Source of the DNA: Macrostomum lignano
Lineage: Eukaryota
NCBI GenBank assembly: GCA_002269645.1
Contig: NIVC01000012.1
Coordinates: 868,001-932,000 of the forward strand
Direction: 5' to 3'
DNA length: 64,000 nucleotides
Made by a program: the position numbers and the translations under genes. Below the pieces are notes generated by a model. It worked only from the letters and a program-made list of their open reading frames with translations. It was not told where the DNA came from and did not search any database. This document shows, one piece after another, positions 8,582 through 62,362 of the stretch. The number at the start of each line of letters is the position of its first letter. The first letter of the stretch is position 1.

Positions 8582-9139
8582 CAGACTTTACAGATTTTGT
8601 TGATTATTGTTATAAAATTTGCGCATTAGCCTACTAATAGCAAACTGGCAAATGACGTGAAAATGTTGCAAAATCAAATTTAAAATATATAATTGCATAG
8701 CAACCAATTTAAATGAATAATTAATCGATTAGTTTTTTATATTTTTAATTAATTATTCGGGTTAAATGGTCGTTAGTAAGTACATCGCGCATTCAAGCAC
8801 GTTTGCGGAGGAAAAAGTTGTTAGAAAAATAGTCTAGTGCGTTTCTTGGCAAAAAATTCAATCATAATGGAAGCATAAATATTATTATTGGAAACTATAG
8901 CGTCTTTAGAAATTTGATTTAGCACCAAGTTTACAATGCCGCATTTGAGAGCCAAATTACAGGCAACTTGCACAGAAAGTTAATTGTGGCCTTTTATGAT
9001 TGGGTGTACTTTACTTAACGGTCTATAGTGCATGTACTTATACAGTATGGGTTCAAGGGTGCATGCGGTATTGTAGCCAATGTTTAACATGTTCACGATA
9101 CCAGCTTAACAACAGATCGGGTTATTATTCTCTGGGGGT

Positions 9140-10190: not shown

Positions 10191-10492
10191 TCTCTAGCAT
10201 ATAGCTCGTACATGTACATGTAGTTAACATACTACTGGGGGTTAACATGCACAGGGGCAGCTGCGTGCATATTTTACATGTAACATCACAATCACAATGG
10301 AGGCATTTCCTCTCAATCACGTGTACATCTCCGTGATGACATTTTAAAGCTACAAGTTTACAACGTGTTCGGCAAAAAAAATACCGAGGTGCATGTACCA
10401 AGAATACCATTCGAGCATGATCGAGCACATCTCAAGCACTATTCGATAGCAGGCAAACTCTAAAATTAGGAAGTAATGAGCTCCAATTCTAT

Positions 10493-13400: not shown

Positions 13401-16400
13401 AAGGACTGGGGGTTGCAATGGATCGATAATTAAAGGACTGGGGGTTGCAATGGATCGATAATTAAAGGACTGGGGGTTGCAATGGATCAATAATTAAAGA
13501 ACTGGGGGTTGCAATGGATCAATAATTAAAGGACTGGGGGTTGCAATGGATCGATAATTAAAGGACTGGGGGTTGCAATGGATCAATAATTAAAGAACTG
13601 GGGGTTGCAATGGATCAATAATTAAAGGACTGGGGGTTGCAATGGATCGATAATCAAAGGACTGGGGGTTGCAATGGATCGATAATTAAAGGACTGGGGG
13701 TTGCAATGGATCGATAATTAAAGGACTGGGGGTTGCAATGGATCGATAATTAAAGGACTGGGGGTTGCAATGGATCGATAATTAAAGGACTGGGGGTTGC
13801 AATGGATCAATAATTAAAGTACTGGGGGTTGCAATGGATCGATAATTAAAGGACTGGGGGTTGCAATGGATCGATAATTAAAGGACTGGGGGTTGCAATG
13901 GATCGATAATTAAAGACCTGGGGGTTGCAATGGATCGATAATCAAAGGACTGGGGGTTGCAATGGATCGATAATTAAAGGACTGGGGGTTGCAATGGATC
14001 GATAATTAAAGACTATGGGTTGCAGTGGATCGAAAATTAAAGACTGGGGGTTGCAGTGGATGGATAATTTTGCAATGGATTGATAATTGAGGACTGGGGG
14101 TTGCAGTGGATCGATGACGATAATAAAGGACTGGGAGGTTGCAATGAATTGATAACTAAGAACTGAGCCGCATTGCAGAACCAACCGTAAAATGCAAAGT
14201 CGCCATTAGCCAGTGGTATCCGCCTGATCGGAGGCGAACGAGGCGGCGGAAGCAGCGGCGGCGGTGTCGGCCGATGCGAGCTGTCGTTTCGACCGCCGCT
14301 TGAGTCGGTGGAGCTGGCCGCTGTGGGGCCGCCTTCGCTGCCTTTCCGCTGCGGTCCTAACGAGTTTAGGGTGACGTTTTAGTGCGCTGTCAGACATTGT
14401 TGCGTCTGAGTGCACAAGAAACTGTTTTAAAGAGTCCATTTTGGCGCCTTCTGAGTATTGTTTCGGCGCCTTTTGGAAGCTACATCTATTTTGACGCCAT
14501 TTGGAATCTATTTTGGTGCTATCTAGAATCTTTTTTGGCGCCATCTGGAATCTATTTTGGTGCCATCTGGAATCTATTTTGGCGCCATCTGGAATCTATT
14601 TTGGCGCTATCTGGAATCTATTTTGGCGCCATCTGGAATCTATTTTGGCGCCATCTGGAATCTATTTTGGTGCCATTTGGAATCTATTTTGGCGCCATCT
14701 GGAATCTATTTTGGTGCCATTTGGAATCTATTTTGGCGCCATCTGGAATCCATTTATTGTCTCCTGCGATCAATTTGACATCAGTCTAATCCGCTTCTAA
14801 ACTCGACCCCTGTAAAAGTGCATAAAAATACATCACAAGCTTCAATACTCACTTTCGCTATCTGAATCTTTCTCGTTCATAGACGACGAAACTGCCAGAT
14901 CGTCGATCAGTTTCTCGGCGTCTAGCGCGGCACCGAAGCTGGCCGAAGGGTCTGCAATTGTGAGGCATTGGAGAATTCGTGAAGTATTTTTACACTCTAG
15001 CTGGCGCTTATCTTAACCACACCTGTTCTAGCTGGCGCTTATTCTAACCACTAGCTGGCGCTTATCCGAACCACACCTGTTCTAGCTGGCGCTTATCCTA
15101 AGCACACCTGTTCTAGAGCTTATCCTAACCACACCTGTTCTAGAACTTATCCTAACCACACCTGTTCTAGCTGGCGCTTATCCTAACCACTAGCTGGCGC
15201 TTATCCGAACCACACCTGTTCTAGCTGGCGCTTATCCTAAGCACACCTGTTCTAGAGCTTATCCTAACCACACCTGTTCTAGAACTTATCCTAACCACAC
15301 CTGCTCTAGCTGGCGCTTATCCTAACCACTAGCTGGCGCTTATCCGAACCACACCTGTTCTAGCTGGCGCTTATCCTAAGCACACCTGTTCTAGAGCTTA
15401 TCCTAACCACACCTGTTCTAGAGCTTATCCTAACCAAACCTGTTCTAGCTGGCGCTTATCCTAACCACTAGCTGGCGCTTATCCGAACCACACCTGTTCT
15501 AGCTGGCGCTTATCCTAAGCACACCTGTTCTAGAGCTTATCCTAACCACACCTGTTCTAGAGCTTATCCTACCAAACCTGTTCTAGAACTTTTCCTAACC
15601 ACACCTGTTATAGAACTTACCCTAACCGCACCTGTTCTAGAGCTTATCCTTACCCTGCTCGGACATCTGCTATAAATGTATAGTTTCTTAGACGGCCCAA
15701 TACATTTTAAATTTTCTGTTTTGGGCGTAAGAAATAAAACTTGCTGTGCAACTAGAACAAAATCTGCTCAAAGCTAGATATGAGCTCCATACTGAGAACA
15801 CTGTATTACACGAAGCTATTTGCTTTGAAGTTAGTGCGGGGCGGGTTTACTGAATGATAAGCTAACTATGCAATTGGTTACAATGGTTTAAACCAGAGCC
15901 ACCTGGGTTGTTCGCAGTCTCTACGCTCGTATCTTATCAGTAAGTCACACGGCAACCTCATGGCGGGAATGTAGCTTTTATTTTGTTTTATTAATGCTCC
16001 TATAGGATTAATCAGCGATGAAAATGGAAATTATCATTACCAGGGGCTTTAGCACCAGGGGCTTTAGCACCAGGGGCTTTAGCACCAGGGGCTTTAGCAC
16101 CAGGGGCTTTAGCACCAGGGGCTTTAGCACCAGGGGCTTTAGCACCAGGGGCTTTAGCACCAGGGGCTTTAGCACCAGGGGCTTTAGCACCAGGGGCTTT
16201 AGCACCAGGGGCTTTAGCACCAGGGGCTTTAGCACCAGGGGCTTTAGCACCAGGGGCTTTAGCACCAGGGGCTTTAGCACCAGGGGCTTTAGCACCAGGG
16301 GCTTTAGCACCAGGGGCTTTAGCACCAGGGGCTTTAGCACCAGGGGCGCCAGCACCAGGGGCGCCAGCACCAGGGGCGCCAGCACCAGGGGCGCCAGCAC

Positions 16401-25329: not shown

Positions 25330-28300
25330 AGCATTACCATATATGGAGTTAAACAAATACAGCTGTTGAAATCCGGTTCCTTGATCAAACAATGTAGGGT
25401 TCTAAATCATTCTGTTCGCGCGTGATTCCAAAAATAGATTTGACTCATTTTGAAAGAAATGGACTTCCTTAGAATATTACTTTAAGTAGAGCATTACGGT
25501 ATGGTCTAATAACTCTCTACACTCTAATAAGATTAGGGTACTTGAATAATTAAGGGTAGTTTGCTGCTACTAGTCCTATGTTCTATTGAATATTAGTAAA
25601 TAAGTAATTGGAGACACAGAGACAAAACACGAGATTTATTACTTGACCGATTATAGGTATATAGGCATACACAAATATATATGCAGGTTGAAAATATGCA
25701 AAAATTAGTGCAGGTGCGATTGCCTAATTACTGAAGTAGCTTGACACTGTAAATTTGTAGTAATATGTAGTTGGGCTGACCCATTTTCTAATCAGTAAAC
25801 ATTCCACCCCAGTTTTAATTTTTAGCAGAGATTTCCCTTAGCCTGTACTTTCAGCTCTCACTTTTGTAAGTTTGCAGAGTTCCGTACTGGGGACACTAAA
25901 GAAATGGCATTTTTTGTTAAAAAAAAATTGACAAAGTATTTTGGTATTTTTCGTTGCAAAAAACTAACAACTTGCAGGATGATTTTGGCAAGGAAAACTC
26001 CTTTACTTGGACATCCTATACTTCTTGAACAAGGAAACATAGTATGAGCTCAACTTGGCCTAACACTACTATTAATAGCACAAGTGCATGACACTTTGTA
26101 GTGTATTAGATAAGGAAATTGGGCACATTTGACAAACTTTGACCTTGAAAAAAAGAAACTATTATTGGGAAAGCAAACGCTTTTAAGGGGATTTAAATAA
26201 GGAGACATAAAAGAAGATTAATTTAATGTATCGCTTACTAGGGTGTAGGCTATATGTGTGCATTAACACATCAATTTGAAAAGAAATAAGGATTACAAAG
26301 GCAGAAATGGCTAAATTGGATGAGGGATGCAAAAAAATAAGGAATAGAAATAGGGATAAATTAACTTATAAGCAATAAATATTCAGCCCTATTACAATTG
26401 CAAATCACTGTTCTATTCGAGCGTACTTTTAATAATATTTAATCAGCAAAGTAAAACTGTAAGAGTCTAAGGGTCTTATATATGAACTTAGAACTGTAGT
26501 CTTAATTATTACGTACGTACCATTGTAGTAATTGATTTTAAATAGAAGTGGATTAAAACTTTCAAAATTGTCCACTTAGCAAATCAGAATCAGAATCTTC
26601 ATTTTCCTCGTCTACATTGGATTCTTTTTGCCATCGACCTCCAGGAGCATCAGAATGCCAGTGTTTTTCCAGCCAATCATTGACATAAATATCCAGCTTA
26701 AATTTCATCATCAGAAGCCCATTTATTCAAATCCGTAATATATGCTCCAATATTTTTGGTGCAAAGTGTCTTCTCCTGTCAAAGGCAATGTGCTTGTAGA
26801 TAGAAAGCCCTCTTTCAGCCTCAGTCGATGATATTGGCAAAGTTAACACAACCATAATTAGATTTTTCATTCTGGGCAGTGACGTGCTTTGCTTTCCCTG
26901 AGGTGGTCCGGCAGGTTTTGGTATACCACCGCTGCCACCAGTGACGTGCTTTAAGAATTTGGGGTTGCTCGGATTTGGTTCTGAAGATCTTGGAATCCCA
27001 CCGCTGCCACCAGTGATATACTTTCGCTTTTGGTTGCCCTGGGCTGTGGTGTTATTACTGAGAATCCCACCGCTATCACAAGTGTAGTGCTTGGCTTTCT
27101 GGCTTCTGTGGTGGGGTGGACTGCTATCGTCCGAGGCAACCTTGCTTAGTATACTTGTGGGGGCTGAGACTGAGGAGAAATCTTCAATTAAAAGTAGTGC
27201 TGCCACCAGCGTGGGGACCGTAGGATCCGCAATGAAGGGGTCTGTTAGGGTTCCACGCAAATAAATAACGCTAGAACAACTAGTCTCAGATATTTCAATG
27301 TCCAAATGACAGGACTCAATGGTAGCAAATGGCCTAAGCGGCGCAGTCCTGGCACTGACAAATGTCCGCGCTCGAGCGTGTCCGAGTTTAGCTCTCAGAG
27401 GACTCCTCTCCTAATAACCTAATAGCTAAGTCTCTCGCTGATGGGCGGCGAGGAATAGGTCTATGCGCCTGAAGCAGCAATAGACTCACGCTAACTAGTC
27501 TCGCGCAGATGGGCGGCAAGGAATAAGTCTATGCGCCAGTTTGAGATGAGCGTCTATTTTATACAGATTGGCATTTTTGGCCTCCCCCGCCGCCGGTGGG
27601 GTGTCTGCGTGGTTAGCAACGGCGGGGGGTTTTAAGCAATAAAAATCTGGGACTCAGTCCCCCAGTTGTACATGAATTGAGTTAGTTCTAGTTATCATCT
27701 AGTTGTCTAGTTCTAGTTCTAGTTGGCATCTATTTATCGTTTGACATTTGAATTTTGATTAAAGAGCCTTCTATTTTCTTACAATTCAAGTCTAGTTACG
27801 AGTCATGTTTTTTCGAAATCACAAATTTAAATTTTGCGCGAAATTTCGCATATCTTTCACACTTCATAGCTCTGGCTAAAATAAGCGTATCAACGTGCCG
27901 GTGGTCTTATTTTAAAGTAGAAATGATTTCCTTTTTAATGTATATTTCGTTTCTTGATAACTCATTTTCTAAATACCCTTTTTTGCTATAAAAAATACTT
28001 TTTTTTCCGATTCGGACTCTAGAATTGTGAAAATAATTGAGGCGTGAAACGCGGTGGTTCGTTTGCTTTAATTTTTCTTTGATTGTTTTCCGTGTGGAAA
28101 AGAATAGAGTTGAGTAATTGCGTGTTAGGGTGCTGTATATTTATATACGTGTTGATAGAACATTCCGGAATCCGGAAAGTTTGAGAAGCGATTTTTAGAA
28201 AGGGGTGTGTGGGAGTTCAAAATACTAAATATAGAAAGTGCGTGTTTACGCGGAAGTTTCTAGAATATAAGTATTGTACTTACTGTACGCTATCTTATAC

Positions 28301-30699: not shown

Positions 30700-30883
30700 T
30701 AGTATTTTATAATTTCTATTCTACTTTTGTGGAAGGTAGAACACTCTACATATTCTCGATCTCTTCCACCAGGAGCATCTGATGCCCAGTGACTCTTTAG
30801 CTAGTTATTTACATAAATGTCCGGTATAATATTGCCCAGTGGAGGACCATTAATGCGAATTCGTAATAGATGCTCAATGTTGG
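30700..30883 (-). pseudogene. 3' part of an older hAT transposase copy, split by the 30884-40192 insertion
   Basis: Joining 40201 to 30883 across one TSD restores YDRGTRLTSANIEHLLRIRINGPP. Confidence 0.85.
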
Positions 30884-32023
30884 CCCTATTGGAATAAGTT
30901 TTCAGACACTGTGGACAGTGCATCTAGTGCGCCATGGCAATCATAAAGTGGCCTGGACGGTGCGTCATGACAATCTTCAAATCCTAAGGTGGTATGGACG
31001 ATGTGTCATTCAAATCTTCAAATCCTAGGGTGCCATAGCACTTTAGGTTTAGGTGATATTGTGCATGACTCCAGTCTCTATCATGTTCATTCTGATGATG
31101 CATCACTCGTTTTTGAGAGATTTAAAGAGATTGAGAGAAAGTTGTGTGTTTTACCGCACTTGTGTTTTACTGCACTCTGTTCTGTACTGTACTTCTGCCC
31201 CCTTCTGTTGTAGTTGTATCTATTTCTTAATTCTTAGTCTACTCGTCTTTTGACTTACAAAGTTACATTGTTGGTCTATTCAAAGAAAAATAAATAATGT
31301 AAATAGTGTGGCAATTGCATCAGTGAGTACTTAAAATAATTACGAACACTGAAACCCTTTACTTCAATTTGGCTAATCGCTATTACTAAACACAAAATAT
31401 TATATCAGTATGTACTACGTACAGTGTGCTTGAGTAACTGCTTAAGACATTCTCTGGACATAAGCAGTTGTACATGAGATGGATTCATCGTATGTGCACG
31501 TGCAATAGGAGTAAAATAGTGGGGGTAAATGTACGTGCAACTGCTTAAGGCAGAGGCGCAGTATATATAATTCAATATTTGGGGTGCATGCATGGCTGTC
31601 GCTGTCTGACAGACGCAAGCTTAAGACACAGACGTATGCTTACATAACACTACAGTACTGGAGTTGTAAGTAACATCGGTACATGGGCAATACAGCAACC
31701 ACAGGGCATCAGCAAAAGATTCAGCATGATCATAAGGGAGACTATGTTACTTGAAGACAGTCTTGAGTTGAAGGATATTTAATAGTAATAACTTGTGTCT
31801 AGTCTATATGATAATATGAATGTAGAGATGGATTGAAACTGGTTTTTCAATCTAGTTGGTCTCTTTAATAGTCCTAAATCCTCATGCTTCCTATGTGGCA
31901 TCTCTATACTTCTCTTTCTCCAGACATACGAAACTCTTCATCCCTAGACATGAGACATAATGAATGAATGAATGAAATGAAAAAAATAGAAGTTTGTCTA
32001 TAGCCTTAGCCTTTGCAACTCTA

Positions 32024-39214: not shown

Positions 39215-40200
39215 AAGGATAATCAATCGAATCATTTGGGTCAATTCAGACAATTCTGAAACGAAAGGTCACACAGTGTGCCACCATTTCAAGATGATCT
39301 TTTAATTTAACATAGAAGGATTAATTTTCAATAAATATTCATGCTGTACTAGCCATTAAAAATTACAGTTAAAAGATATAAATGAGAGATGTTTTTGTAT
39401 GCAACAAATATTAAGCTAATTAATGAAATAACAATGACAACAGTTAATACAAAATGAAGAAACTACGTGATGAACAACACAGAGTTCACGAACAAACAAA
39501 ATTGTCTTTGCCTTATCCACACACTTTTTCAGTAGTAGTTGTAGCACTTTGGCTCGGGTCGGGTTATCAAATCTGATAACTATTTAGCATGGTGTTTCGA
39601 AGAATATTTTCACATTTAAATGTCAGCATAAATAAATGTACGCGCAACCAATCAAAAAGATAATTAAACAAAGCAGAAAATTTGTTGAGACTTTTAATAG
39701 AATTTAGTTTACTTTTTTATTTCTTGCAACTGCGTTATAAGAGAACATTAAGAGCAATTAGCATTTGGCACTATGTTATAATGTTTATGAGGCAATAAAG
39801 AACATTTCTGCTACGATCTTTCAACTACAATTTCCAATTTTACGATTAACTTGCATGCATATTCTAGATGACACAGCAATCAATACATATGATAGGAGAT
39901 ATGCTATACTATAGCCCATAGCAATATTATCAAAGTTATAGAAATTAGAAAAACAAGTTTTACTTACAGTTTGCTGAATTTCCACCGTGCTGCTGACTTT
40001 CTCCTGTGCATGCTTCTCATCCTTGTTCAGCAGCGCTGTATGTAGCGCGTGATGTCCTCCTTGCATCTTACCTGTGAGCTGCTGTGCGTCATGGCGCATG
40101 GCGCGCGTAGCGCGCCATGCGCCATGACTATGAGGAAAAAGAAAAAGTGCGCCGGACGCCGTCCGCGAAAATACCACTTATTCCAATAGGGAATGTTGGC

Positions 40201-41010
40201 AGATGTTAACCGTGTTCCTCTATCATATTCTATATGTTTATAGATAGAAAATCCTCGTTCTGCATCAGCTGAAGAAAAAGGCAAAGTTAACACCCTGAAT
40301 TTGTTTTTTTATTCTAGGCATCCATTCAACTGTCTGTACTTCAAGAAAAAAAGCCCAGAATGAAACAGGACTTTTAAGCTTGTAGGCGCAGAATTCAGTC
40401 TTGTGAGCTATTAAGCTATGAATGAGTATTTGAAACTGGCCAGATATTGTCCTTTGCGACCTCCTCTGATGCCCCTGTGCTTGGCTCGAATGAGAATCAG
40501 AATCAGATGATACTGTTTACATTTCATCTTCGGCAGAATCATCTTGCATTCCAAGGCGTCTAGCTAGATGAATAATATCAATATACCAAAACAACCAAGT
40601 ATACCAAAACAATTCCAAGTGTCTTCAGTAGGTAAAGTATCTATGTAGTTGAGTAATAATATTGTCAATGATGTCAGCTCAAATATCTTTTAGTGGTGGA
40701 AATTTATTTTCGGATCTTTCGGCAGCACTTGTAGCAGAGGACGAAGCAGAACTTGCACATGAGCGACCCCTAGTACCTGTAGCACGAACTGAGCAAGGTT
40801 GCTTTATTAAAAATGTTGAGTTCTGTCTTGTCCTATAAAGCATCGAAAGTTAGTGTGAGAGGTCATGTGTCCAGCAGCGGGATCGGTACTCTGTCTCCTC
40901 GGTATGCCCTGTCACTACTCAGCACTTGCAAGAGTTTAGGAGTGCTGTTGTGCTAGGCCCATTTTCAGTTTTCAGTACTTCCAATGAGTTTATTAAGCGC
41001 CCACACAGGA
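40201..41010 (-). pseudogene. 5' continuation of the split older hAT transposase copy
   Basis: LTLPFSSADAERGFSIYKHI; colinear with 58.5-59.3 kb. Confidence 0.8.
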
Positions 41011-41173: not shown

Positions 41174-42568
41174 GTTACAAGAATACTGCCAATTAATTTG
41201 GTTACTCGTCAAATTCAAATGATACAGCGCCTGGAATAACAATAGCGTTAGCTGATGATCGATACATCAATGAAAGTGAAGGATATAAGAAAGAGGAAAT
41301 AGATAATTTATTGTTAGCAAAGCGAAATGTTTCAGACTCTTAATCAAATGAAGATAGTGACGCAGTGAATATCACCATGTTACAATTAATTGACGATGCT
41401 CATGGGCGCGTAAACAATGTCTACACAAAAAAACCGAGATTGACACTAAGATGTATTCTAAAAATTCTAAAACTGAAATTAACACTAAGATGTATTCTAA
41501 AACTGAAATTGGCACTTTATTAGCAGAAAGGCAAGGTACTGCGGGGGGTATAGAGAGTTCGAAATTAGTCAATGTACTTTCATTACTGACTTCAAACGCT
41601 TCCCATCCTGACATGAAATTGACAGCTTCTCATAACTCTTCAGCAGCATATCATGTTGCAGATTCAAACCCAGCTTCAGAATGGAGCAGTGTAGATGACT
41701 CAGACAAGTGGATACGATTTCAATTTTTAAAAAGAGCTAGGAAAGTTGTAGAGATAAAGTTGGAAGGAGAGGTGTGGCCTGGTTGGTCTGTTAGTGTTAG
41801 CCTAAATGGAACAAACTGGGCACCTGTTGAACAAAGTGCACCCATTGAACTACGAAGGGGCAATGCACATCTTAGGAAACAAATACCCAATCCCTCATAT
41901 TATTTCCTTTATTCTCTTAATTTTTCTGGTTCTGTAAAGCTTAAAAAAGTTGAATTACTTGAGAGACAAACAGTGGTTAATGATTTAGTGTGGGCTATAG
42001 ATAGACTTCAAGCTGTACAAAAGCTATACGTAGACAATGCGCTTGAATCAGTGGAGCTGCGACTAAGACGGGGACTAGGTTTCAAATCTTATACAGGATA
42101 TATTCCCTCACTAGCAACATACCAAAACTATAGAGAAAGGGGTTTCAATGTAGCGTCATCAGGAGCATTTAAAACGTCAGATAATTGGGGTTATATAGTA
42201 TCTAATTCAGAATGGGCATCGGGGAATGATTCCAATTTTTACATTGAAGTACAACTTCCCGAGTCTATTCAAATTTGGAAATTCGGATTGAAAGGAACCA
42301 AAGCAGTAGGTAGTGAAATTATAAAAAAATCAACCGAAATGTTTTATTCCAAAAGGTAGCAATAACAAGAGAGACTTTAAGAATCTTTTCTACCGAAAAC
42401 GCTGGTTTAGTTTCTGGAGTGATGAAGTATTTCGAAATAGCTTCCACCGAAAAATTATCCGTTTATAGAGTGCATATTAATTCAGCCACTAAAGGATCAA
42501 CTGTTCTTATTGTTTCAGGCTTTCAACTTTATCCGATTTTAGACATATTGCCACATAAAAATGAATGA
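41170..42568 (+). pseudogene. Fibre/receptor-binding-like protein with Y(S/T)KTEI(D/N) repeats and discoidin (F5/8C)-like segments
   Basis: Frame starts at ATG 41170, has two early stops and an A7 frameshift (41427-41433), then the 302-aa ORF, then a frameshifted tail ending FQLYPILDILPHKNE*. Domain call from motif memory. Confidence 0.55.
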
Positions 42569-43462: not shown

Positions 43463-45700
43463 TCATTTGAACCCGTGAGGATGCGTTATAATTCCATTGG
43501 ATTCAATGTATCTTTTGTCATCGAAAGGACTAATGGCCTTCTTATTTTGTTCTTTTAAAGTCATGTTATGCTTGTCTGATCTAAGGCTATACACTTTCCT
43601 ATAGACTGGTTCGTTATAATCAAGTAGTATATTTCTATAGTCATCATATTGTACATGATGCTTCACTGTTGACTTTGAGATTTCCTTTAATTTTTTCTTC
43701 TCCTTCCCTTCATTTTGATTGCTGACACAAACTGTTTTAAATGAATATGCTTTCGATCTTAGAGCGGTTACTTCTGTCATTATGTAATTATATTTTGCCA
43801 ATTCATCCTTGAATGTTCCCAGCTTTCCACAATTAGTCATATCATGTAAATCAATCGGATTTTTTTAGTATACAGCGACAAATCAAAATGCTCCTTCATC
43901 TGAGGAATGTCTTTATAAATATTTTCTGTCTTCACATAAAGAATGAATGAGTCGGTGTCAGAGGTAACAATCTCAACATTATCTCCCCATTTGGACTTGA
44001 AAACTTTATAAAACGTTTCATACATACGCAATTTCGAGAGATCCAGAATTGCTTGTCCAGCATATGTTGGCTTTGTTCATTAGATTTTCATTAAATATTT
44101 TAAAGTCTATAAAATCTGGCTTGGATATTATCTTAGATATGTCATCCTCACCTGTCAGCAACTCAAATCGCTTTCTCTTTTTAACATCCTCCATTGTCTT
44201 GCCAAAGATGCTTACATTAAGCATTTTGAACTGATTGTCTTCGAACTCAATTTTGCTTCTTTTGCCTTCTTTCTTTCTATCGTATTAAACTCGATATACT
44301 CCTTTAACCATGGCTTTTCATTGAATGATATCGTCCTATGTACTTTTGTAACTTTCAAGCCCATCTCTTCATATAATCGCAATAGCTTATGATGTACAAT
44401 ATATTTTGATTTATTTTTTAAATTAAGGATCAATTTAGGAACTTTTCCAATCTTTTTCATTTCGACTTCTAGATATCTTTTCTGATATTCACTCAATTCA
44501 GTTTCTGACACCGTTGCACTTTCAGGTGCTAATGGGAAGGCATACGTTTTCTTTTTTGATTCTTCTGTATATTCAAGATCACATTCAACAAGACAGCCAC
44601 GTCCTTCAGGGGGATTTTTATAATAGTTGGAATCAGCTTCCCATTTAAAGTCAGAAAAAGGAAGAGGTTCCAACATACTATAACCATAGAGATTTGTACA
44701 ATCAACGTAAAGTAAGTAGGAAGTTGGATTTTTTGAAAATAGCCTGGAAGATAAGGATTATTTGCCTTTACATATCTTGACCCTAGAACTCCACTAAATC
44801 CGCCTCTTATTCCTCTATCAATCATATGAATCATATCGATATCCGCCAGCAAGTCTAACTCAACTTTACTTTTCTTCAACCCAGCATTCAAACTCAATCC
44901 TGGTGCTGAGAAGCATCTGGCTGGATCGATCTGAAAGTGTTTCAGGAAGAATTTTCTATAGTGTTCGAATACATCTGCTAATAATAGAACGTCAACTTTA
45001 AGATACAGCATCATATAATCCTCCAAATTCGTACAATTAAAAGTTTTCCACATTTGTTTTGCAAAATTATATTCATCTGAAGAAATGTCTTCACTTTTCA
45101 ACCTCGAGTAGAACTCTTTCAATGGTGGTAACTCAGTTTCTGCTAATCTTCCAAAGCTTCTGATATACTCATTAGAATACACCCCTGCGCTTAACATATT
45201 GAAAATCGCTTTCGTTTTTAAAGTATTTCTTTGTTATGATAAAGTCTTCATCCTTCAGGGACTTTGCGCAGATATCAAGCGAGGAAGCCAAGAACCTGTA
45301 TGAATCTAGGAACCTCAGTACTACTTTGTTACATCCAAACTCGAGATAAATGTACTCTTCAGAAGTTTTAGATAGTGGAGGAAATAATTTATCCTCCATG
45401 GTCTTTGCTCTTTAAGTGTGTGACCAAGAAGTGAAAGTCATAGTGGGATCCATTCTGGAAATAGATTGGGATTACTCGCTTCTTACTCTCGAGAGCATTG
45501 CAGGATTTACAGGCAGCCCCTCTATTTTTGCCACTATAGTGACAATGTTCTCTTACCTTACCTAGCTTAAGTGTAAAGTCATTTTTACAATTCGCACATT
45601 TTTCAGCCTTGTAAAACTCTCCATTGTTGCTTACTGAAGTAATCAGTTTTCAATTCTCAGTCACTGATCGACAAACCGATCACATCCGGAAAAAAAGCCG
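43463..45700 (-). pseudogene. Protein-primed DNA polymerase B with endonuclease-VII-like Zn module, several frameshifts
   Basis: CANC..VREHCHYSGKNRGAAC..CN; NGSHYDFHF; FLDSYRFL; YVDCTNLYGYSM..LP; NVSIFGKTMEDV; SDTDSF; PFDDKRYI. 5' end missing. Confidence 0.92.
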
Positions 45701-46029
45701 GGTAATTTTAAGTGTTGCTATGTATTGTAAGTAGAGAAAAAAGCAGTCAGGCATTCTTAGTTAAATCACAATAGTCAACAGTAGTGAGTCTTCCCGACTC
45801 CTCACGGAAGAGGAATCGGTACCAGCCAGCACCTAGGGCTTGTACAGCCAGGGCGTATTCGCCGTCGGAAGCTGTAACATTCTCGGGGTACATGTACCCT
45901 GGAGGTGGCCGCGCAAACACCCAGTTTTCGAACGCTGCAATGAGAGAAGACGCAGGCCATTACTACCCGATCAGCTTGTTAATAAACAAAAAGCGCAATA
46001 TTTGCTTACCATCTCTCACGTAACGCATT

Positions 46030-46170
46030 TGTGTGCAGCACAATAGTGTTGGAAGAAATTGTTTCTTGCCCATGGTTTTAGCAAGCTAACTCGACTTCCT
46101 GTCATCACAGATGCTCCATCTGTTGCAACGCCCCATAGTCATTGCGAAACAACTGTCGCAATACTATCTT
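46030..46170 (-). pseudogene. Short hAT transposase fragment of the 58-62 kb family
   Basis: WGVATDGASVMTG..KPWARNNFFQHYCAAHK matches WGMTTDGAAVMTG..RPWAKNNFFQHHCAAHK. Confidence 0.8.
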
Positions 46171-46234: not shown

Positions 46235-46885
46235 ATGAGATTCGTGAGATTCTGGGTGTAGGAATCGTGAGATTCTGGGGGTAAGAATCGTGAGATTTTG
46301 GGGGTAGGAATCGTGAAATTCTGGAAGTAAGAATCGTGAGATTCTGGGAGTAAGAATCGATAGATTCTGGGGGTAAGAATCGTGAAATAGATTCTCGGGG
46401 TAAGAATCGTGAGATTCTGGGAGTAAGTATCGTGAGATTCTCGGAGTAAGAATCGTGAGATTCTGGGAGTAAGAATCGTGAGATTCTGGGAGTAAGAATC
46501 GTGAGATTCTGTTGGTAAGAATCGTGAGATTCTGGGAGTAAGAATCGATAGATTCTGGGAGTAAGAATCGATAGATTCTGGGGGTAAGAATCGTGAAATA
46601 GATTCTGGGGGTAAGAATCGTGAGATTCTGGGAGTAAGCATCGTGAGATTCTCGGAGTAAGCATCGTGAGATTCTCGGAGTAAGAATCGTGAGATTATGG
46701 GAGTAAGAATTGTGAGATTCTGTTGGTAAGAATAGTGAGATTCTGGGAGTAAGAATCGTGAGATTCTGGGAGTAAGAATCGTGAGATTCTGTTGGTAAGA
46801 ATAGTGAGATTCTGGGAGTAAGAATCGTGAGATTCTGGGAGTAAGAATCGTGAGTTTCTGGGAGTAAGAATCGTGAGTTTCTGGG
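46235..46885. repeat. Minisatellite, 23-bp unit GGGAGTAAGAATCGTGAGATTCT
   Basis: Direct tandem periodicity. Confidence 0.95.
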
Positions 46886-49268
46886 ATAAGAATGATGCTC
46901 ATAACAAAGCTTTTTATTTCAAAGTTGCAGCCATTTTTATCACCCATGCGATTTTTGTCAAGTTAAGAGTCGGTGGCAAACACTGTGTTAAGCAATCACA
47001 GAAGCTCAAAACCCACCTGCGAATCTGCTGGAGACCTGCATGAACTCTGCGTCCCACGCCGTAACGATGGGGCTGCACGTGACTGCCGGGCTGCTGCTGA
47101 GCTGCTCGCTGAAATCGTTCGCTGCTGGCATTGCTGGGCTTCTGGACTCAGAGTCTGAGGGCTGATTTGAGATGTGCCAAGAGATCGATTTGAATCTTAT
47201 ATGTCTTCGTGTAATATAAGATAATAACTGCCAAATGCGTGAGCCAAATATATTTATATGAAAATATTTCAATATTATCTTATTGAAAATATTTCAATAT
47301 TATCTTATTGAAAATATTTCAGTATTGTCTTATTGAAAATATTTCAATATTGGGAAATTTATTATTATTATTATTACCAATTTCAATATTGGTAAGTTGC
47401 AAACGCGGAAAATTCTAAGTGTCAGATATCTGACCCATTGGCCATTATTAGTGTCAAACCCGAAAAAGCTGTTACATGTACGAAAAATGAGCGAATCTGC
47501 TCTACTTACAAACATCTAATAATAAGACCATTGGAATAATACAGTTACTGATTGTACTTACGCTTCAACTCAGTCACATGGTCATCCGGAGCTGGCTGAC
47601 GCTGAGAGCGATTCCCACAGTGTGAGTCAATGACATACTGGACGAGGTAGTCGCGCCCAATGCGAAGGCGAATGTAGTCCCGAAGGAATTTCGCAACGTT
47701 CGGCGACACGATTGTCGACAGCCACACCGTGGAGCCAGATACAGTGAGCACCTCCTGTAGTGAGTTTGGCGGACGTATGAGTATATGAGTGTATGTGTAC
47801 TACGCATGAATCTATCGAGAAATTTGATGCAACTGATAAAGAGGACCTTGAAATAGTGTAAAGGAAACATAAGTACTTGATCATAAGTAGCCCTACCTCG
47901 TCTTGAAACGCTTTAGGAATTGGGGCGCTGTCAGAACCGTGCCCACTACTGCGTAGCTTCTTTACTAGGTGTCGCTCCATGTTCAGTAGCTCAACTCAAA
48001 TGAAGTCCTTCAGGGACTCTGAATGTAAGAGAAGATCAGGCCATAGATAAGCGATCGCTGATAATTGCTTACTGCTGTCAAGCATACCAACCCCGCAAGT
48101 TCGTTCTCGATAGGTCATATAGCGGACCATGGTTTGTTTATGCAACACGAATCCTTATAATAACTTAGTTACCAGGTTCCCTTCCCTTCTCTTTGACTCT
48201 TCCTTCCTCCCTTTCTCTGCTTGCTGGCTTTTAGTAAACGGCGCATCCATGGGTTACATGATTACATACTGTTGTTGATGCTTTATATCACTATTTGGAT
48301 GGGTGGGCATGACAATTTTTAATGTTGCCGAGTATATGTAGTCCTACTAATAGCATTGTCATTGAAATTTTACAGACTGACAGTTTACTCGTACCCAACA
48401 TATTTGCCTAATCATCCGCCAAACAGACTGTAGCAGTAGTCGGCCTTGATGAGCCAGCCATTGCACTGCCTGATGTCACTTCCGTTTGAAGAGCTGCAAC
48501 AAAGAGATGGAATTGTCTTAGTAAAATATGTGACCAGTATTTGGTACCTGCATATATATGCCCTTTAAACTTTGAATGAGTGTACTCTATCCTTAAGTAT
48601 TTTAATACACCTACCAGTAGCTGCGCCTGGGGAACCAATGCGTCGTACCGTGTTTTGCACTGTGTGACTCCAGATTCAAATGAACAATGTGGTACATCTA
48701 CAGTGCAAAATGGGGGTAACATAGCTATGAAAAAAACAGTCTCATATATAAATGTCTCACTCTGCAACAACAATCCAGTAAGCTCACCATGGTGACTAAA
48801 ACTAGTGCGCTTCGCTTGATTCCTCTTACTTTTATGTAAATAACCATCAGAGCTAACATCACTGGAGCTCCCTAAAAATATTCAGCGAAAAACCACTTTC
48901 ATGAAGATTGATAAATGAGCATGATGTATAGCACTTATGTAGACAAAAAACGTTGCTCTAATTCAACTCAGGGCATATGTCAGCATTATCAATATCGATT
49001 ACGGTTATATTTGAGTTTTTCGTATCCATCCAAATCATGTTATCTACCTCTGGTCGAAGTGGTGGATTGGTTGAATTCCTATCTTCTGTGGTTGGCATTC
49101 TGGACGGTATTTTTTTCTTTGTTTTACTATTCCATGCTATACTGCAACTACCGAATATAAAATTACGTTTTCCATAGAGATTAATTAGTATCGTACGATT
49201 TTGTTTGTTTTAAATTTGTCAATCTTGGCGGTGGTGCATCATGGTTTTGAAACGGATCCTGTACGATC

Positions 49269-56440: not shown

Positions 56441-58275
56441 GTGACTTGACTTACTTGACTTAGCTGCAGGGCTGTCCCGGAGGGGACACAGCGGGAAGGC
56501 GCGGGCGCCCATTCCGCTAATCCCTGAACGGCCGACGCGTCGCTATGGACGGTGAATTGGCGCCGCCCAGGGAGGTCCCCCAGTGTCGCCAGCAGCTATA
56601 GTGCTTTCTGGAAAGGAGAGTTCAGCCCTGCGGGTGGCCCAAAGGTAGCGCATGAGCTGATTAAAGTTTTCGGGTTTGCACGCTTCAGTAATAGATGTGT
56701 GTGGCCCGAGGTAAGTGAGTCTGGCCCGCGTGAAGGCGGGACAGATGCTGACGAAATGCTCAGCAGGTTCGTCACCTGAGTTGCAGAAACTACATGTGGC
56801 GTTGATGGCGTTGCCCTGCAGGTACTGGTGCCTGGAGAAGCAGCCGTGACCTGAGAGGGTCATGGTGGCAGCCCGGATGTCTCTGCGCGAGAGGCGCAAG
56901 AGGAGCTTCCGGAGCTGGTGAGAGGGCTGAGGGACAGCGCCTCTGGATTGCCTGCAGTTCGTGCGGTTCGCCCAAGTCGAGCGGTGCTGAGTCCTGATCC
57001 ACGCTTTGATGCGTGCGTCGATGACACAGCCAGGAATCGGGACAAGAGGTTCGGGGCCGAGAGAGGAGCCGGAGGCACCAACTTTTGCAAGGGTGTCAGC
57101 TCGGATTCCGAAGACCCGGCCTTGTCCTCAACTCCTTCTCCGACTGGCAGGTTTGGTTCCCGGGGCTTGGCCGGAGCCGTTACCACGATCGCCGAACTGC
57201 TGCTAGCAGAGGGGCGAGACGCAGCTTTGGCTTTGGGATCGGCTTGCGCCTTTCCTTGGGCCTTAGACTGCGCCCCGCTCTTGCCAGAGATGCCGGGGTT
57301 GGCAGTAGCCTTCCCTTTGGAAGACTTTCCTCGGCGCATCTTGAGCTTAAGGGCACCCAACTGGAAAGAGGATCCATTAGGGTACCGACTCGCCCAAGTG
57401 CTGGAAAGGCCGAGGAAAATTGAGTTGCCCGTCTCCCCCCTGCGGACTCGGCGGTGATACACCAGTCCACTAGCAGGGAGGTCGGGGTTCAGACGCAGTA
57501 GGACCCGGCGAATAACGTCTGGTCCAGCTGCGGTGCTCTTAGCAGGGACGAAAACCACAGGGTATCGTCTTTGGACGCTGGCCCTCCCGAAGAAAAAGAG
57601 CTCCACCAAAGTCAGCATCCAAGGAGACCGTCGGTAGCCGCTGGAGCAGCTGCCGAGCATCCTCCTCGCTGCTAGGGGCAATAAGAACGAATGTGCTTCG
57701 CAGCACCATCCGCTCAATGCCGATGGAGATTCCCTCCTCGACAGTCAGCTCAATCAGATAGGAGTCAACAGCACTCCACACTTTTTGAAGCTGATCAGTG
57801 GTCCATTCCTGGTCGCGACCTTGGAGGATCACTCCCGGGATTTTGGCCTTGGCCTTCGCCGCAAAGGTAGCTCCCGAAGGAACCTCCTTGTTGGCAGTGG
57901 CCATTTGTTGCGCCGTGGTTTCGGCCTCGGCAGCCGCGGCAGCATCTCCAGGGAGCGCCGCCGCTGAACTACTGTAGCTTCTACCGGCCTGCCCGCCTGG
58001 TTGCCTTGGGACTCCAGTCGCTTCAGCATCCATGGTGGACGCCGCCGCTTTGGCCCCCGCAGCTCCCTGCTTGGCCTGCCTTTTGGCGCGTTGTTTAGCA
58101 CGTTTGCGCTCAAGCCGAGCCCGCTGAGCTTCATCAGATCTGCCAGATTTGGCCGGTCCTTTAGGCTCAGAGCTCACGGTTCTCTTAGATCCACCAGTGG
58201 AGCTGGCAGGTCTTTGGGCATTTTGAGTTTGGTAGCTCTGGTCGGATCTGCCAGCAGAGCCAGCCGGACGTGATA
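56441..58275 (-). mobile_element. Internally deleted LOA/R1-like non-LTR retrotransposon
   Basis: ORF1 at 58177-~57050 with one frameshift near 57570; only the ORF2 C-terminus remains (W..QH..W..CRQ..LSR..LSGH..CSFC..EHF..CPA, ~57040-56543); 3' tail of AAGTC-type repeats at 56441-56463; no APE, RT or RNase H. Confidence 0.8.
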
Positions 58276-58308: not shown

Positions 58309-61300
58309 CTAAAAGAGTCCACTCTGTAAGATATTTTTTTCTGCTTCGTTGTCATTTGTAACTCGTTCCTGTCGACCTCCAGGAGCATCAGATCGCCAGT
58401 GGCTTTTGAGCCAATCATTTACATATGCATCAGGCTTGAAATTAGCCAACGGAGGTCCATTTATACGAATCCGCAGCAAATGCTCCAAAGTTTTAGGCGT
58501 GAGGCGTGACCTTCTATCATAGGCTATGTGCTTATAGATTGAAAACCCCCGTTCAGCCTCTGCAGATGATATAGGCAGTGTTAGGACAACCAGGATCAGT
58601 TTTTTTATTCTAGGCAGCCATTCAACTGTCCTTTTTTCCATAAAGTGACTCCAAAATTTTACGGGGCCTCTACTGCGGTTGGCACAAAAGTCAAACTTGT
58701 GTGAAGTAACCAGGCTGTTTATTAGAATAGAAAACTGCCCAGATATTGTCCTGATGTTGTCTCTAGAATCTGATTCTGAATCTGAATCAGAGTCTCCTGA
58801 GACAGGGCTCTCGTCTTGCATACCAAAGCGTCTAGCCAACGGAATTATTCTTGAGCTGTAAGTGAAAACTGTATGTAATGTCTCAGCCGTAGGCAATGAT
58901 TCCTGATTGAGTACATCAAATATTGAATAATCATCCTCAGGAAAATATTTACGCAGTTGACTGACAATGCTATCAATAATGACAAGCCGGATTTCGCTCA
59001 GTGCTGGATACGGTCCTACATCAGTAGCATCAGTACTGCATCCCCGGCGTCTTAGTCTACTACATGGCTGTTTCAACTCAAACCTTTGTGTTGAATCGTC
59101 AGTACCAGCAGGGCACACAAAGTCCGAATGAGATAGGTCATTTGTATGACAACGTACACGGTATTCTATATCTGCAGTAGGTCCCACAACTCTGCGGCAT
59201 CTGCACGAATTTAAGAAATCCATAACTCGAGGACCATTGTTTGTCTTTAACATTTCTAAGGAACGGATCAAGTCATTGTGGCGTTTTTGTAATCCTATAA
59301 ATGTACCTCTGGCACTTTGAAATTGCAAAGATTCAAATTCCAAAAGCTTTAGAATGTCAGTGAGAAATAGGTGCAAGGAATAATATCGTACATTTTTCAA
59401 TGTCTTCAGCAATCCGGAGGCAGTAGCTTTACTTTCATCATCAAAATCTGATGAAGTTGAAATGATATTTTCTAGATTTGTGAGAAGAAGGTAGTATGAC
59501 TTCCTAATTACATCCAGGGCGGACACTTCTGATGCAACCCATCTTATGCGATAGATTCTTTTAAGTTCGTAAAAAAACTTTGTCCAATACTTCTGAAGTT
59601 TCAAGTAATGAAGCTTTGCGCTTTGTAGCATGTCGCATGTAAAATTTGTATAGAGAATTTATGCTTGTATCAAGGTGCTGCATATATGGGAAGTTTTCAA
59701 AAGCATGATAAATTGAAAGTTCCAACTTATGGGCTGCACAGTGATGCTGGAAGAAATTGTTCTTTGCCCAAGGCCTGAGTCTGCTCACCAATCCTGCTCG
59801 ATTTCCTGTCATGACTGCTGCACCATCAGTTGTCATGCCCCATAGTCTTTCTTTGATACCTTCCAGAATATTGTCTTCAGTGAACATACCAATAAGCATT
59901 TCATAAATTCTTTGTCCTGTTTCTACTTGAGCAAGGCGTTTGAACCGATAGAAAAACATCATAGGGTTGCTGTTTTCAAGAATTCTAAAGTAGATCATCA
60001 AATAACTGTTAGAATGGATGTCAGATGTTGTGTCTAATACAATTGAAATTGGAAGATCTTTAGAATTTTTTATATACTTCAGTAGCGTTTTATGCATGGT
60101 CATACTGATTGATTCAGCCATTGCAGTAGCACTTTTACGATGCCTGTGATGACTGCCCATATCCAAGCCATTCTTTATTTGTAAATCAACCATCAGATTA
60201 TGTGCACTAAATGGAACATTGGCTTTTACTTCAGCATATACAGTCGTTAAAACCCTGGCAGTTATTTCATCTCTTTTGGTTTGTGCTAGTTTAGCCACCC
60301 TATTCATCTCATTAATTTGCCTTGCAAGTATGGAGTGGTGTTTCTCTTTCATTCAATTAATGGCTTCAGTGTGAAATAAACTTGATGAATGTCTTTGTAG
60401 TTTTCTTCGTACACTATCCTTTGCATGTCCATTTGGAACATAACCTGATTCGGTCACAAATGTCATGCCACGTTTACTTGCTTCATTTGCTGCTGAGGGA
60501 AGTGCATTGGCATACTGTTGACAGATTCGGCACTGTATTCCAGATCGCGATAGATCATCGGTATTTTGAGCGTATTGAAACCATGTCTTCATTTCATTGG
60601 TTACAAATTTCCTCGAAAAGTACCTAAAATAAATTATTTAGATTAGAGGCAGGTAGTAGATTTAGTAGTAATAGACTAAAAAGGCATTTAATTAAAAGAT
60701 AAAAATAAATGCATATAATTTTTCTTACGCTGACTGATGTGTTTCCAAGGAATCTAGTCACTGCTCTTGAAAACTAGATGTATCTTCCCAATCCTTTCTT
60801 AGGACTTGTTCGGTTCTTGCTTCTCCTGTCCCTGATGGTCCTGATCCTAATGCTGATGTTGCTAAACATGCATCTGCAATTGTACTTATGCATGGCCTTT
60901 TTCTTTCGGAAGGTCCTGCAATTACAGAGTCACTAATTTGAATATCAACGTCTGGATCACACGAATTGGACGCATCAGCATCTATATCAACAGCTGAAGG
61001 CGAAGGCCTACGTCCATGACAACAAGATCGCTTTAAGGATTGCCTTTAAACATTTATTTGCCTAACAATTTCTACTTCTAGATCAATTGTTTGCTGGTCA
61101 CTTTCCAGCACCTTATCCACTTCCTGCTCCTGTAGACTTCCAGCTGAGCAAAAGGCACTTTGTTCCGCATGCCATGTTGTTTGCGCAGTTTGAACAGCTT
61201 GATCTCGATTGGCTGCTATTTCCTGTGAATATTCTATAGCCTTTGCCAGTTCGTTACGATGTGAGCTTGCTGAGCATGCAGATGGGGGTGGCCTTTCACT

Positions 61301-62362
61301 TCGTGATGGTGAGCTAGGAGAACTTGTTGGTGAATTAACGATAGTTCCAATATTCTCCTCCAAAATCCAATGTGCGCCTGAGCAGTCATTTTCTTTACCT
61401 GGAGTCAATTTGCCAAGTTTCCACCTTGTAAAAAGCAAAGGCTTTTGTACTTCACTGTTGGATGTAGGACACCGGTTTATGGAATAGTCTTCATGGCCAA
61501 CTTCATCCCATTCTCTTGCTGGATTTAGGATGTAGTTAGGCTTATCTCTTAAGGTTGAGTAAATTGATTCAAAAAATGTGCACCTGTTATTGTGTGTACT
61601 TTGAGCATATATTATCATGTCATGTACATTACGCCTTATTATTTCAGCCAAGGAATCGTCAATTGTAAGATTGTCTAAAAAAATAGGCCTTCTTTGGGTT
61701 AAATGCATCTTAGCTAGCCGCAGTTTTCCAATGCTACCTCTTGAACTAGCATCATCAGTTCTAGAATAGTCTCTTTTGATGCAAGAGGATGATGACCATT
61801 GCACTTTTACCATTTCCATTTTTTAATGCATTTGGATCAGTTGGCAGTGTCCTACTAGCAACTAGCAGACTTGAAGAAACTAGCAATAGACAACTGTGAT
61901 GATCCTGCAGAGGCAGGAGCTGTTCTTGGTAGCCCATGTCCAGCTTTTCCTTGGTATCCAATAGAGGAGTCAGTGAAAAACATATCTGCTGTTCCCAGTT
62001 TTTCCTTTGATGCTATTACAAACAAACTATTTCTCTCTTTGAAGCTAGTTCGATAGAAGTCAGCAGAAAATGTTATCACTGGCTTTCTAACATCACCACT
62101 ATATTCTTGGACACCAATCAAAAGAAAATCACGCAGTCGTAGATTCTAAAGTTAAGGCAGTAGCACTACTTGGACAAACTTTTTTTAACTCTATGAACTC
62201 TGCATATTCCTGCGATCCAATATTTGGTTCATCTGTATTAAGCTCATTAATGACAATGGAGCACTCTTGAGCTAGGCAGTTATTAAAAAGTAATATGAGC
62301 ATCATGCTATGCAGAACACTCAAACAATGAGTGCAAGACATGATCCTTTCTTTGTCTTTCAT
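58309..62362 (-). pseudogene. hAT (ZNF862-like) transposase gene with N-terminal signal peptide and lamin-tail-like domain; one intron (60728-60624)
   Basis: TTF-type finger CRIC..H..LFH; VLDTTSD, TTDGAAVMTG, CAAH, IRWVASE, LPISSAEAERGFS. Disrupted by four frameshifts (~62150, 61860, ~61770, 59575) and three stops (61046, ~60770, 60353). Confidence 0.85.

Follow-up and report, generated by a model that had tools for sequence, protein, structure and literature searches.

Fusion genes combining a host-derived part with a transposase are known, the KRAB-, SCAN- and SET-transposase fusions being examples, and so are proteins, such as FGF3 and PTHrP, that possess both a signal peptide and a nuclear-localisation signal. 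The tail of the lamins is a nuclear immunoglobulin (Ig)-like fold with reported DNA and chromatin binding. Transposases, those of the hAT superfamily (Ac, hobo, Hermes and Buster-type) included, are nuclear enzymes, so that a leader and an extracellular-type, cysteine-bearing domain at the front of one of them are unexpected. The present study deals with a gene of exactly this composition, i.e. a hAT transposase headed by a signal-peptide-like leader and a lamin-tail domain (LTD), located in a stretch of 64,000 nucleotides of Macrostomum lignano (Eukaryota; assembly GCA_002269645.1, contig NIVC01000012.1, positions 868,001 to 932,000), the whole of which is referred to here as the window.

The LTD-headed hAT is a real and apparently undescribed variant of the hAT transposons. 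In the full-text literature, with most subscription journals and Repbase lying outside the search, no paper was found in which a hAT transposase is connected with a lamin-tail domain or with a signal peptide; within that scope, the opinion expressed in a preliminary description of this DNA, that no characterised system resembles it, agrees with the literature.

Layout of the copy in the window

The minus strand of the window from 62362 to 58309 represents one pseudogene, consisting of a leader, an LTD-like domain, a drifting linker, a putative C2H2 finger and a hAT transposase. Its collinear open reading frame (ORF) pieces are spread over three frames, and the damage amounts to seven lesions: four frameshifts, near 62131-62161, 61854-61860 and 61773-61777 and at about 59620, and three in-frame stops, TAA at 61048-61046, TGA at about 60759-60757 and TGA at 60355-60353. 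There is, in addition, one 105-nt GT..AG intron. The intact homologue P0001, used as a tblastn query, tiles the whole N-terminal part in the expected order and in three frames (summed E 3e-166), and the hidden Markov models (HMMs) of the family match the window collinearly over 62326-58312, the HMM of the head domain accounting for 62320-62147, 62142-61861 and 61738-61346. All the peptide strings quoted in the preliminary description were located on the minus strand, to which all coordinates in this section refer.

According to the reading-frame translation, the start codon(s) and the signal-peptide-like leader MKDKERIMSCTHCLSVLHSMMLILLFNNCLA cover 62270-62362, with a second candidate start, MSCTH, at 62341. 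The leader runs on into QEC-SIVINELN..AEFIELK, the first strands of a divergent ‘extended’ LTD (61355-62269) that reaches from QEC-SIVINELN to KLGKLTPGKENDCSGAHWILEE and contains three of the frameshifts. Inside it, the LRDFLLIG piece lies in the second frame (62142-61858; this ORF piece reads LRDFLLIGVQEY...) and the LKNGNGKSAMVIILL piece in the third (61868-61764), the first frame being resumed by the DYSINRC..KLGKLTPGKENDCSG piece, which continues to 61376 and ends with ...KLGKLTPGKENDCSGAHWILEE before the long low-complexity linker. The latter, drifting fast, spans 60729-61354 and holds a Cys-helix-Cys stretch, the basic motif RKRP (60904-60893), the junction motif WEDTSSF..(W)L (from 60790) and the first two of the three stops. 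It is followed by the phase-2 intron (60624-60728; GC|GTAAGA ... TTTTAG|G), by the C2H2 (BED/TTF-like) finger region ..KTWFQY..CRIC(60532)..H..H (60356-60623), directly after which the third stop is found, and by the hAT transposase core with the C-terminal dimerisation region (58312-60352), carrying the frameshift near 59620. The transposase of this copy, about 700 amino acids (aa) long, ends with ..SSAEAERGFS..LQSGLF*, its stop codon being at 58309-58311.

The fusion in intact relatives

The preliminary description had regarded the LTD-like part and the transposase as one gene after repair of the lesions, and this is borne out by intact relatives, which read straight through with no conserved stop between the two. 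Because relatives only 25-30% identical hold both halves in uninterrupted ORFs, the leader-LTD-transposase fusion is, judging from these frames, genuine and not an artefact of stitching. Such single ORFs are 1000-1250 aa long; in terms of the transposase HMM, 40 of the 150 best representatives hold the head and the transposase in one ORF, the order being always the same. Six of them, P0007, P0036, P0061, P0067, P0071 and P0126 (1040-1249 aa), exhibit the LTD-like front and the hAT dimerisation region at the back. The shortest, P0007 with its 1040 aa, is unbroken from the LTD through the entire transposase, and the fusion ORFs of P0067 and P0071 sit on contigs of 77 kb and 12 kb. The Pfam hAT dimerisation region at the C-terminus scores above the curated cut-off of 21.4 bits in P0036 and P0071, and just under it (19.7-20.7 bits) in P0061, P0126 and P0067.

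Shorter or split relatives present the same arrangement. The protein P0001 (576 aa, 63% identical) has an intact head exon, the donor site of which coincides in codon position with that of the window copy, and P0004 continues from the head via a W-E-D-T junction into the finger. In contig L006, a head exon that includes the leader MCKKKFFDIFFIFVVMFIASMQC is followed by an intron and by an intact transposase of 700 aa, and the contigs L007/L008 have the same order of parts with a nonsense codon in the LTD, between P0003 and P0010.

Concerning the size of the family, it seemed tiny because word-indexed searches, yielding about ten relatives only (and with the full-length query just one), missed most of it. 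An exhaustive profile search with the head alignment revealed a large family of 701 representatives at E<=1e-3—a total that takes in host multi-LTD proteins—and 131 at E<=1e-30, many of the members being 1000-1250 aa long with the head at the N-terminus.

Fold and ancestry of the head

Taken together, profile comparisons and the structural model identify the head as a real, albeit divergent, lamin-tail domain by predicted fold and by ancestry, as the preliminary description had proposed from a few hallmark motifs. The LTD of the head is about 230-310 aa long and has conserved cysteines. Its profile retrieves multi-LTD proteins that match in 8 to 20 stretches, called LTD by Pfam; in P0030 the Pfam LTD falls in 8 matched stretches (E 7.5e-95) and in P0035 in 5 (E 4.3e-62). 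When compared by hhalign with the repeat unit of about 200 aa, built from the Branchiostoma, Ptychodera and Patiria proteins (amphioxus, hemichordate and sea star), the head was aligned over 183 columns with a probability of 99.7% (E 2.4e-26). The alignment spans the whole domain, including a common L-V-D-x-V-V-Y strand and the D-S-L-x-R-C...TPG-x-x-N-D-C end.

The AlphaFold model of the head, calculated from 55 sequences, has a predicted local distance difference test (pLDDT) value of 84.5 and a predicted template modelling (TM) score of 0.80; a first model from 10 sequences had reached a pLDDT of 61 only and was uninformative in Foldseek. With the better model, the first four ranks among the PDB matches in Foldseek are lamin B1 or lamin Ig-like domains (E 2.3e-4 to 7.8e-3, probability 0.84-1.00, target-normalised TM 0.34-0.53). 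The best are the lamin B1 tails 3umn_A (E 2.3e-4) and 3jt0_A (E 4.7e-4), both with a probability of 1.00; the lamin Ig-like domains 1ufg and 7crg are matched as well. A profile search against PDB sequences gave noise only (insulin-degrading enzyme and hexon at E>0.3), and Pfam found no match at E<=1 on the stitched N-terminal part of the window copy; taken alone, this last result would have led to a wrong dismissal of the LTD.

Among 16 full-length proteins, pairwise identity averages 0.29 for the LTD, 0.34 for the transposase core, 0.25 for the middle region of the transposase, 0.38 for the C-terminal region and 0.24 for the junction and finger, the linker having with 0.14 the lowest value of all regions. 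The head is thus conserved about as well as the transposase while the linker drifts, a pattern that speaks for the head being kept under selection.

The proteins P0030, P0035, P0064, P0092, P0096, P0111, P0136, P0141 and P0153 are large multi-LTD proteins with 5-20 units and a conserved Cys pair, their hosts being amphioxus, a hemichordate, a sea star, a brachiopod and two sponges; the N-termini checked have a signal-type leader. They are uncharacterised, some being labelled ‘LTD domain-containing’, and no functional description of them was found.

Leader, linker and intron

The hydrophobic leader pointed out in the preliminary description proved to be a conserved feature. A strongly hydrophobic window precedes the C-x-(I/V)INE motif in 43 of the 62 scorable relatives, i.e. 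representatives with at least 15 residues upstream of INE, vs 0.5% of 1380 control windows from the same proteins; the score required a mean Kyte-Doolittle value of at least 2.2 over a 10-residue window within 30 residues ahead of the INE motif. In the window copy (LSVLHSMMLILLFNNCLA), the hydrophobic core is at the extreme N-terminus, directly ahead of the domain, and the model of the head has an N-terminal helix at residues 3-15. In the common layout, a short and often basic start leads into a hydrophobic core of 10-15 residues and then into small residues; the flank that comes next is acidic or neutral, and a Cys stands two positions ahead of INE. By eye only, small residues occupy the positions -1/-3 (CLA|QEC, VAS|EQN and SWA|EIR). 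The host multi-LTD proteins P0030, P0064, P0153 and P0035 have the same kind of start and the same spacing from leader to domain. This layout is that expected of a cleavable secretory signal, and the leader is therefore called signal-peptide-like on the basis of hydropathy, position and the pattern in leader-bearing homologues.

The linker, despite its drift, keeps three features: a Cys-helix-Cys stretch, modelled by AlphaFold with good confidence, the basic RKR(R/K) motif and the junction. Of 34 scorable relatives, 27 have the basic motif no more than 45 residues ahead of the W-x-T-T..F junction; in the AT-rich subgroup, the usual distance is 17-20 residues. As a pattern, it could equally fit a monopartite nuclear-localisation signal or a dibasic/furin-type processing site. 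A transmembrane segment was sought because it would place the transposase on the nucleoplasmic side, and none is visible in the linker of the window copy. The finger pattern k.W..y..CR.C...H.....H is preserved by at least 60-80% of the 17 full-length sequences aligned. None of the finger models of Pfam matched this C-x2-C...H-x5-H arrangement in front of the core.

The intron donor of the window is at the same codon position as in contig L001. An intron after the head exon, in phase 2 and with a GTAAG donor, is seen in the window (60728), in L001 (at about 2917) and at the ends of P0005, P0006, P0008 and P0009, its position differing between the two subfamilies. If it were retained, translation would meet a stop immediately (..GCG TAA, ..CAG TAA), leaving a leader-LTD-linker protein devoid of the transposase. 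Many members, P0007 and other relatives among them, have no intron at the linker-finger site.

With regard to what these parts may do, the mechanism we prefer, giving it about an even chance, is that the leader engages the endoplasmic reticulum (ER) and the nuclear enzyme is an escaping fraction or an isoform. A large share of the nascent chains would be drawn into the ER by the leader, and the LTD with its cysteines would fold there as in its leader-bearing relatives. The nuclear transposase would then be either the fraction that escapes translocation, with the internal basic motif serving as a nuclear-localisation signal, or the product of leader-less isoforms. The head itself may act as a throttle or a tissue gate on transposition, or provide a second secreted product, and would be no part of the catalytic machinery.

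The strongest alternative accepts the same architecture and assumes that the leader is not used as an ER signal, being an uncleaved anchor or helix or simply bypassed, and that the LTD is a nuclear targeting domain binding DNA, chromatin or the lamina. It is a possibility to be taken seriously, if clearly less probable than the ER route. A transposase has to act in the nucleus; the lamin tails, reported to bind DNA and chromatin, are the best structural matches of the head; a motif resembling a nuclear-localisation signal is conserved in the linker; and the LTD is about as conserved as the enzyme. What it explains poorly is the classic secretory layout of the leader, kept across relatives that have otherwise drifted in sequence, as well as the fact that the nearest sequence relatives of the head are not lamins but the leader-bearing multi-LTD proteins, with the same spacing and the same conserved Cys pair.

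Transposase and transposon character

In the window copy, the hAT dimerisation region (Pfam PF05699) is recognised with 33.6 bits (E 3.4e-8), i.e. above the cut-off of 21.4; the transposase of L006 reaches 37.2 bits. The core is divergent, the dimerisation region alone reaching the Pfam thresholds, and a phmmer search with the transposase against the PDB gave no match to any solved structure. The four catalytic-type motifs P.S.i.D..tD, sDGA.vM.G, HC.AHrl.La and S.d.ER.FS are kept in at least 60-80% of 17 full-length sequences, and all of them are retained on the minus strand of the window as VLDTTSD (60040-60020), TTDGAAV (59833-59813), HCAAHKLEL (59743-59717) and SSAEAERGFS (58569-58540). Their assignment to catalytic residues is one we presume from established knowledge of hAT motifs, not from a structure.

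The window harbours a dead copy of an autonomous-type hAT DNA-transposon gene from a large and apparently unnamed lineage, in which a single polypeptide is composed of the leader, the LTD, the linker with RKR(R/K) and the W-x-T-T..F..W junction, the putative C2H2 finger, a DDE-type core with CxxH and the hAT dimerisation region. A different view would be that of a host gene family, in which a domesticated transposase was fused to a host exon and of which the window copy is a pseudogene. In its favour, the head exon and the transposase exon are kept apart by an intron in the window, L001 and L006, as would be anticipated if a host exon had been fused to a transposase. Neither terminal repeats nor target duplications came to light, and P0001 is identical in three samples. 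A domesticated gene would be single-copy, intact and free of decay. Here, to the contrary, there are hundreds of divergent clusters and very many divergent lineages, many members are intronless, catalytic-type motifs are retained everywhere, and decayed copies lie in repeat-rich DNA (the window copy with its seven lesions and the broken L007/L008). In the 474-aa protein P0063, moreover, the head (residues 5-215) passes straight into the final third of the transposase (positions 444-681 of the HMM), so that it reads as an internal-deletion derivative of the kind left by DNA transposons. Near-identical 1249-aa copies were, finally, assembled on separate marine-metagenome contigs, which share a break point some 300 bp upstream of the ORF. 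Domestication is, all in all, unlikely.

Two metagenome scans for more copies found nothing. Near both ends of the LTD-hAT ORF, contigs from unrelated samples repeatedly display 7-11 consecutive G (or, on the other side, C), after which come TC(A) and a stretch rich in A/T: at 1-8 and 4176-4182 in L005, 4084-4204 in L006, 6694-6761 and 13821-13876 in L009 and at position 1 in L012 and L013. In L009, an imperfect 31-bp inverted repeat surrounds the G-runs (6672-6702 / 13866-13896). These repeats may, to judge from their pattern, be subterminal binding sites of the transposase; poly-G at contig ends could be a sequencing artefact, the copies in L006 and L009 being internal.

Origin of the head and weighing of the evidence

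The profile comparisons described above show, at the level of sequence, that the leader-plus-LTD head is homologous to the N-terminus and one repeat unit of the host multi-LTD proteins with signal-type leaders. As its origin, we infer as likeliest a single capture of the 5' exon(s) of a multi-LTD host gene by a hAT element; conceivably, the direction was the reverse and the element donated the head to a host gene. The reading as a whole—a dead hAT copy, whose lineage captured a leader-LTD head, has kept it since and may use it as an ER-diverting throttle or gate—is in our opinion rather probable, with a good deal of room left for doubt.

Several observations weigh against it. First, as for the hosts, all 20 of the 20 fusion proteins looked up are unnamed, coming from Logan, ENA, JGI, a source tagged ‘gem’ and unannotated NCBI contigs. 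Second, no single member reaches the gathering score of the Pfam LTD (PF00932; cut-off 34.3 bits), weak hits being present in 2 of 10 members, with 13.3 bits for P0005 and 0.0013 as the best E-value of a single member. Third, about a third of the scorable relatives are without a leader in the called ORF; in some cases, e.g. L006, this is due to a later start chosen by the gene caller, though not demonstrably in all of them. Fourth, leader-less isoforms are not evident, since many intact members are intronless and no conserved internal start codon for such an isoform is evident among the relatives examined. Fifth, repeat searches and a k-mer/target-duplication scan of the window, L005, L006, L007, L009 and L010 found no convincing terminal inverted repeats or 8-bp target duplications, the sole candidates being the imperfect inverted repeat of L009 and the recurrent G-run/TCA repeats, so that mobility and the limits of the element are inferred. 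The partition between ER and nucleus, the role of the RKR motif and the benefit to the element are hypotheses, too, and the motif could equally be a site for a proprotein convertase.

A further idea takes up the exported transposase mentioned in the preliminary description. In this version, the leader would function in secretion, and the transposase, either entire or as two halves cut at the conserved RKR(R), would leave the producing cell for another cell type. We regard this as very improbable. If it were true, the element would supply a transposase or an LTD factor between cells, for example from soma to germ line, bypassing the silencing of transcription in the germ line, and it would be the first DNA transposon with an enzyme routed through the secretory pathway. 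The last explanation, that a secreted LTD gene and an adjacent inserted hAT element were joined merely by the repair of lesions, could appeal to the seven repairs and one intron needed to read through the window copy and to the failure of Pfam to see an LTD in the stitched sequence, yet is refuted by uninterrupted two-part ORFs in many independent contigs and samples at 25-30% identity.

The architecture has persisted through a divergence to about 25% identity and is shared by hundreds of sequence clusters. Behind it may lie a novel mode of controlling or routing a transposase, be it diversion to the ER, dual targeting or a second secreted product; alternatively, this type of LTD and its leader may have an overlooked nuclear role. 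It links the multi-LTD proteins of amphioxus, hemichordates, echinoderms, brachiopods and sponges to a mobile element and provides a tangible example of domains passing between transposons and the surface or secreted proteins of their hosts. Since intact ORFs exist (e.g. P0061, P0067 and P0071), the question is directly testable in cell culture.

Surroundings in the window and in related contigs

The DNA around the window copy is rich in repeats, with satellite arrays, a fragment of a type-B DNA polymerase and a GC-rich block abutting the 3' end of the ORF. Four remnants of hAT transposases, 40-77% identical to the main copy at the protein level, are located on the minus strand at 26592-26876, 30807-30884, 40192-40999 and 46028-46138. 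The preliminary description counted three more decayed members in the window and saw in them the proof of a mobile family. Related hAT remnants do exist, consisting of the transposase core or the C-terminal part only, with no LTD part detected nearby; they do not bear on the LTD, and the mobility of the LTD-headed family is not shown by them. The remnants at 40 and 46 kb are in the right order for one copy split by later insertions.

Tandem-repeat (satellite-like) arrays are situated at 3226-3798, 4343-4949, 6367-8032, 9127-10194, 10728-12710, 13148-14165, 14996-15654 and 46238-46893. The array at 10728-12710 has an inverted half, and the long ‘ORFs’ within the arrays are artefacts of the repeats. 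On the minus strand, the ORF at 44529-45197 has a weak, sub-cut-off match to organellar/viral type-B DNA polymerases (Pfam DNA_pol_B_2, E 3e-4) and may be, as far as this match goes, a Maverick/Polinton-like remnant; on the plus strand, the ORF at 41451-42359 contains an F5/8 type C (discoidin) domain (E 5e-7). On its minus strand, the GC-rich block (56860-58275, about 57% GC) carries two long ORFs that overlap and encode much Ala, Lys and Arg. The block starts about 35 bases past the transposase stop (about 58275 downward) and may therefore have truncated the hAT element at its 3' end. No Rfam family was found in the window.

In the marine-metagenome contig L011, the ORF at 4143-4742, directly 3' of the intact 1249-aa LTD-hAT ORF, begins with the signal-like leader MRIQKTKMLRIVLLFELIMIFKNHVADA; it is within this ORF that the sister contig L012 parts from L011. 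Pfam had no match for this ORF, for the ORFs of the GC-rich block or for the one at 9085-9945 in L009. In L006, a gag ORF resembling those of long terminal repeat (LTR) retrotransposons and a reverse transcriptase/RNase H ORF (4233-7072) lie immediately downstream of the LTD-hAT copy, past the C-run repeats.

Comparison with known systems

With the members of the hAT superfamily, the LTD-headed elements share the C-terminal dimerisation region, the D...D...E motifs with CxxH, a putative C2H2 finger placed before the core, a transposase part of about 700 aa and the occurrence of internal-deletion derivatives and decayed copies; a Pfam match to FAM200-ZBED5_RNase-like is on record for relatives and is weak for the L009 gene. 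They differ from the known hATs by a divergent core, by termini and target duplications that were not found and, above all, by an extra N-terminal module of 330-500 aa (signal-like leader, LTD and linker), no such module having been found described.

The multi-LTD proteins of Branchiostoma, Ptychodera, Patiria, Lingula, Corticium and Oscarella resemble the head in having the (I/V)INE..EFIEL strand pair just a few residues after a leader and in the ‘extended’ LTD unit of about 200 aa with L-V-D-x-V-V-Y and D-S-L-x-R-C...TPG-x-x-N-D-C. They are, however, arrays of 5 to 20 units without any transposase, whereas the head of the transposon is a single unit with extra insertions and cysteines, running into the linker and the enzyme. 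As to the lamin tail domain itself (PF00932; lamins A/C and B1), the resemblance lies in the Ig-like beta-sandwich, the best PDB matches of the model and weak direct Pfam hits. The head is, through its insertions, twice as long and, with normalisation to the lamin domain, attains a TM-score of no more than about 0.5; it remains sub-threshold in Pfam and occurs in a secretory-type context and not at the end of an intermediate filament.

FGF3 and PTHrP offer a functional analogy without homology, in that an N-terminal ER signal and an internal basic motif in one chain may permit a dual fate. The known host-transposase fusions, in which a host-derived exon is joined to a transposase by splicing or fusion, are similar in principle, but the presumed captured part is here a secretory-type leader with an extracellular-type domain and, unlike in single domesticated genes, the head appears to travel with a multi-copy, decaying transposon lineage.

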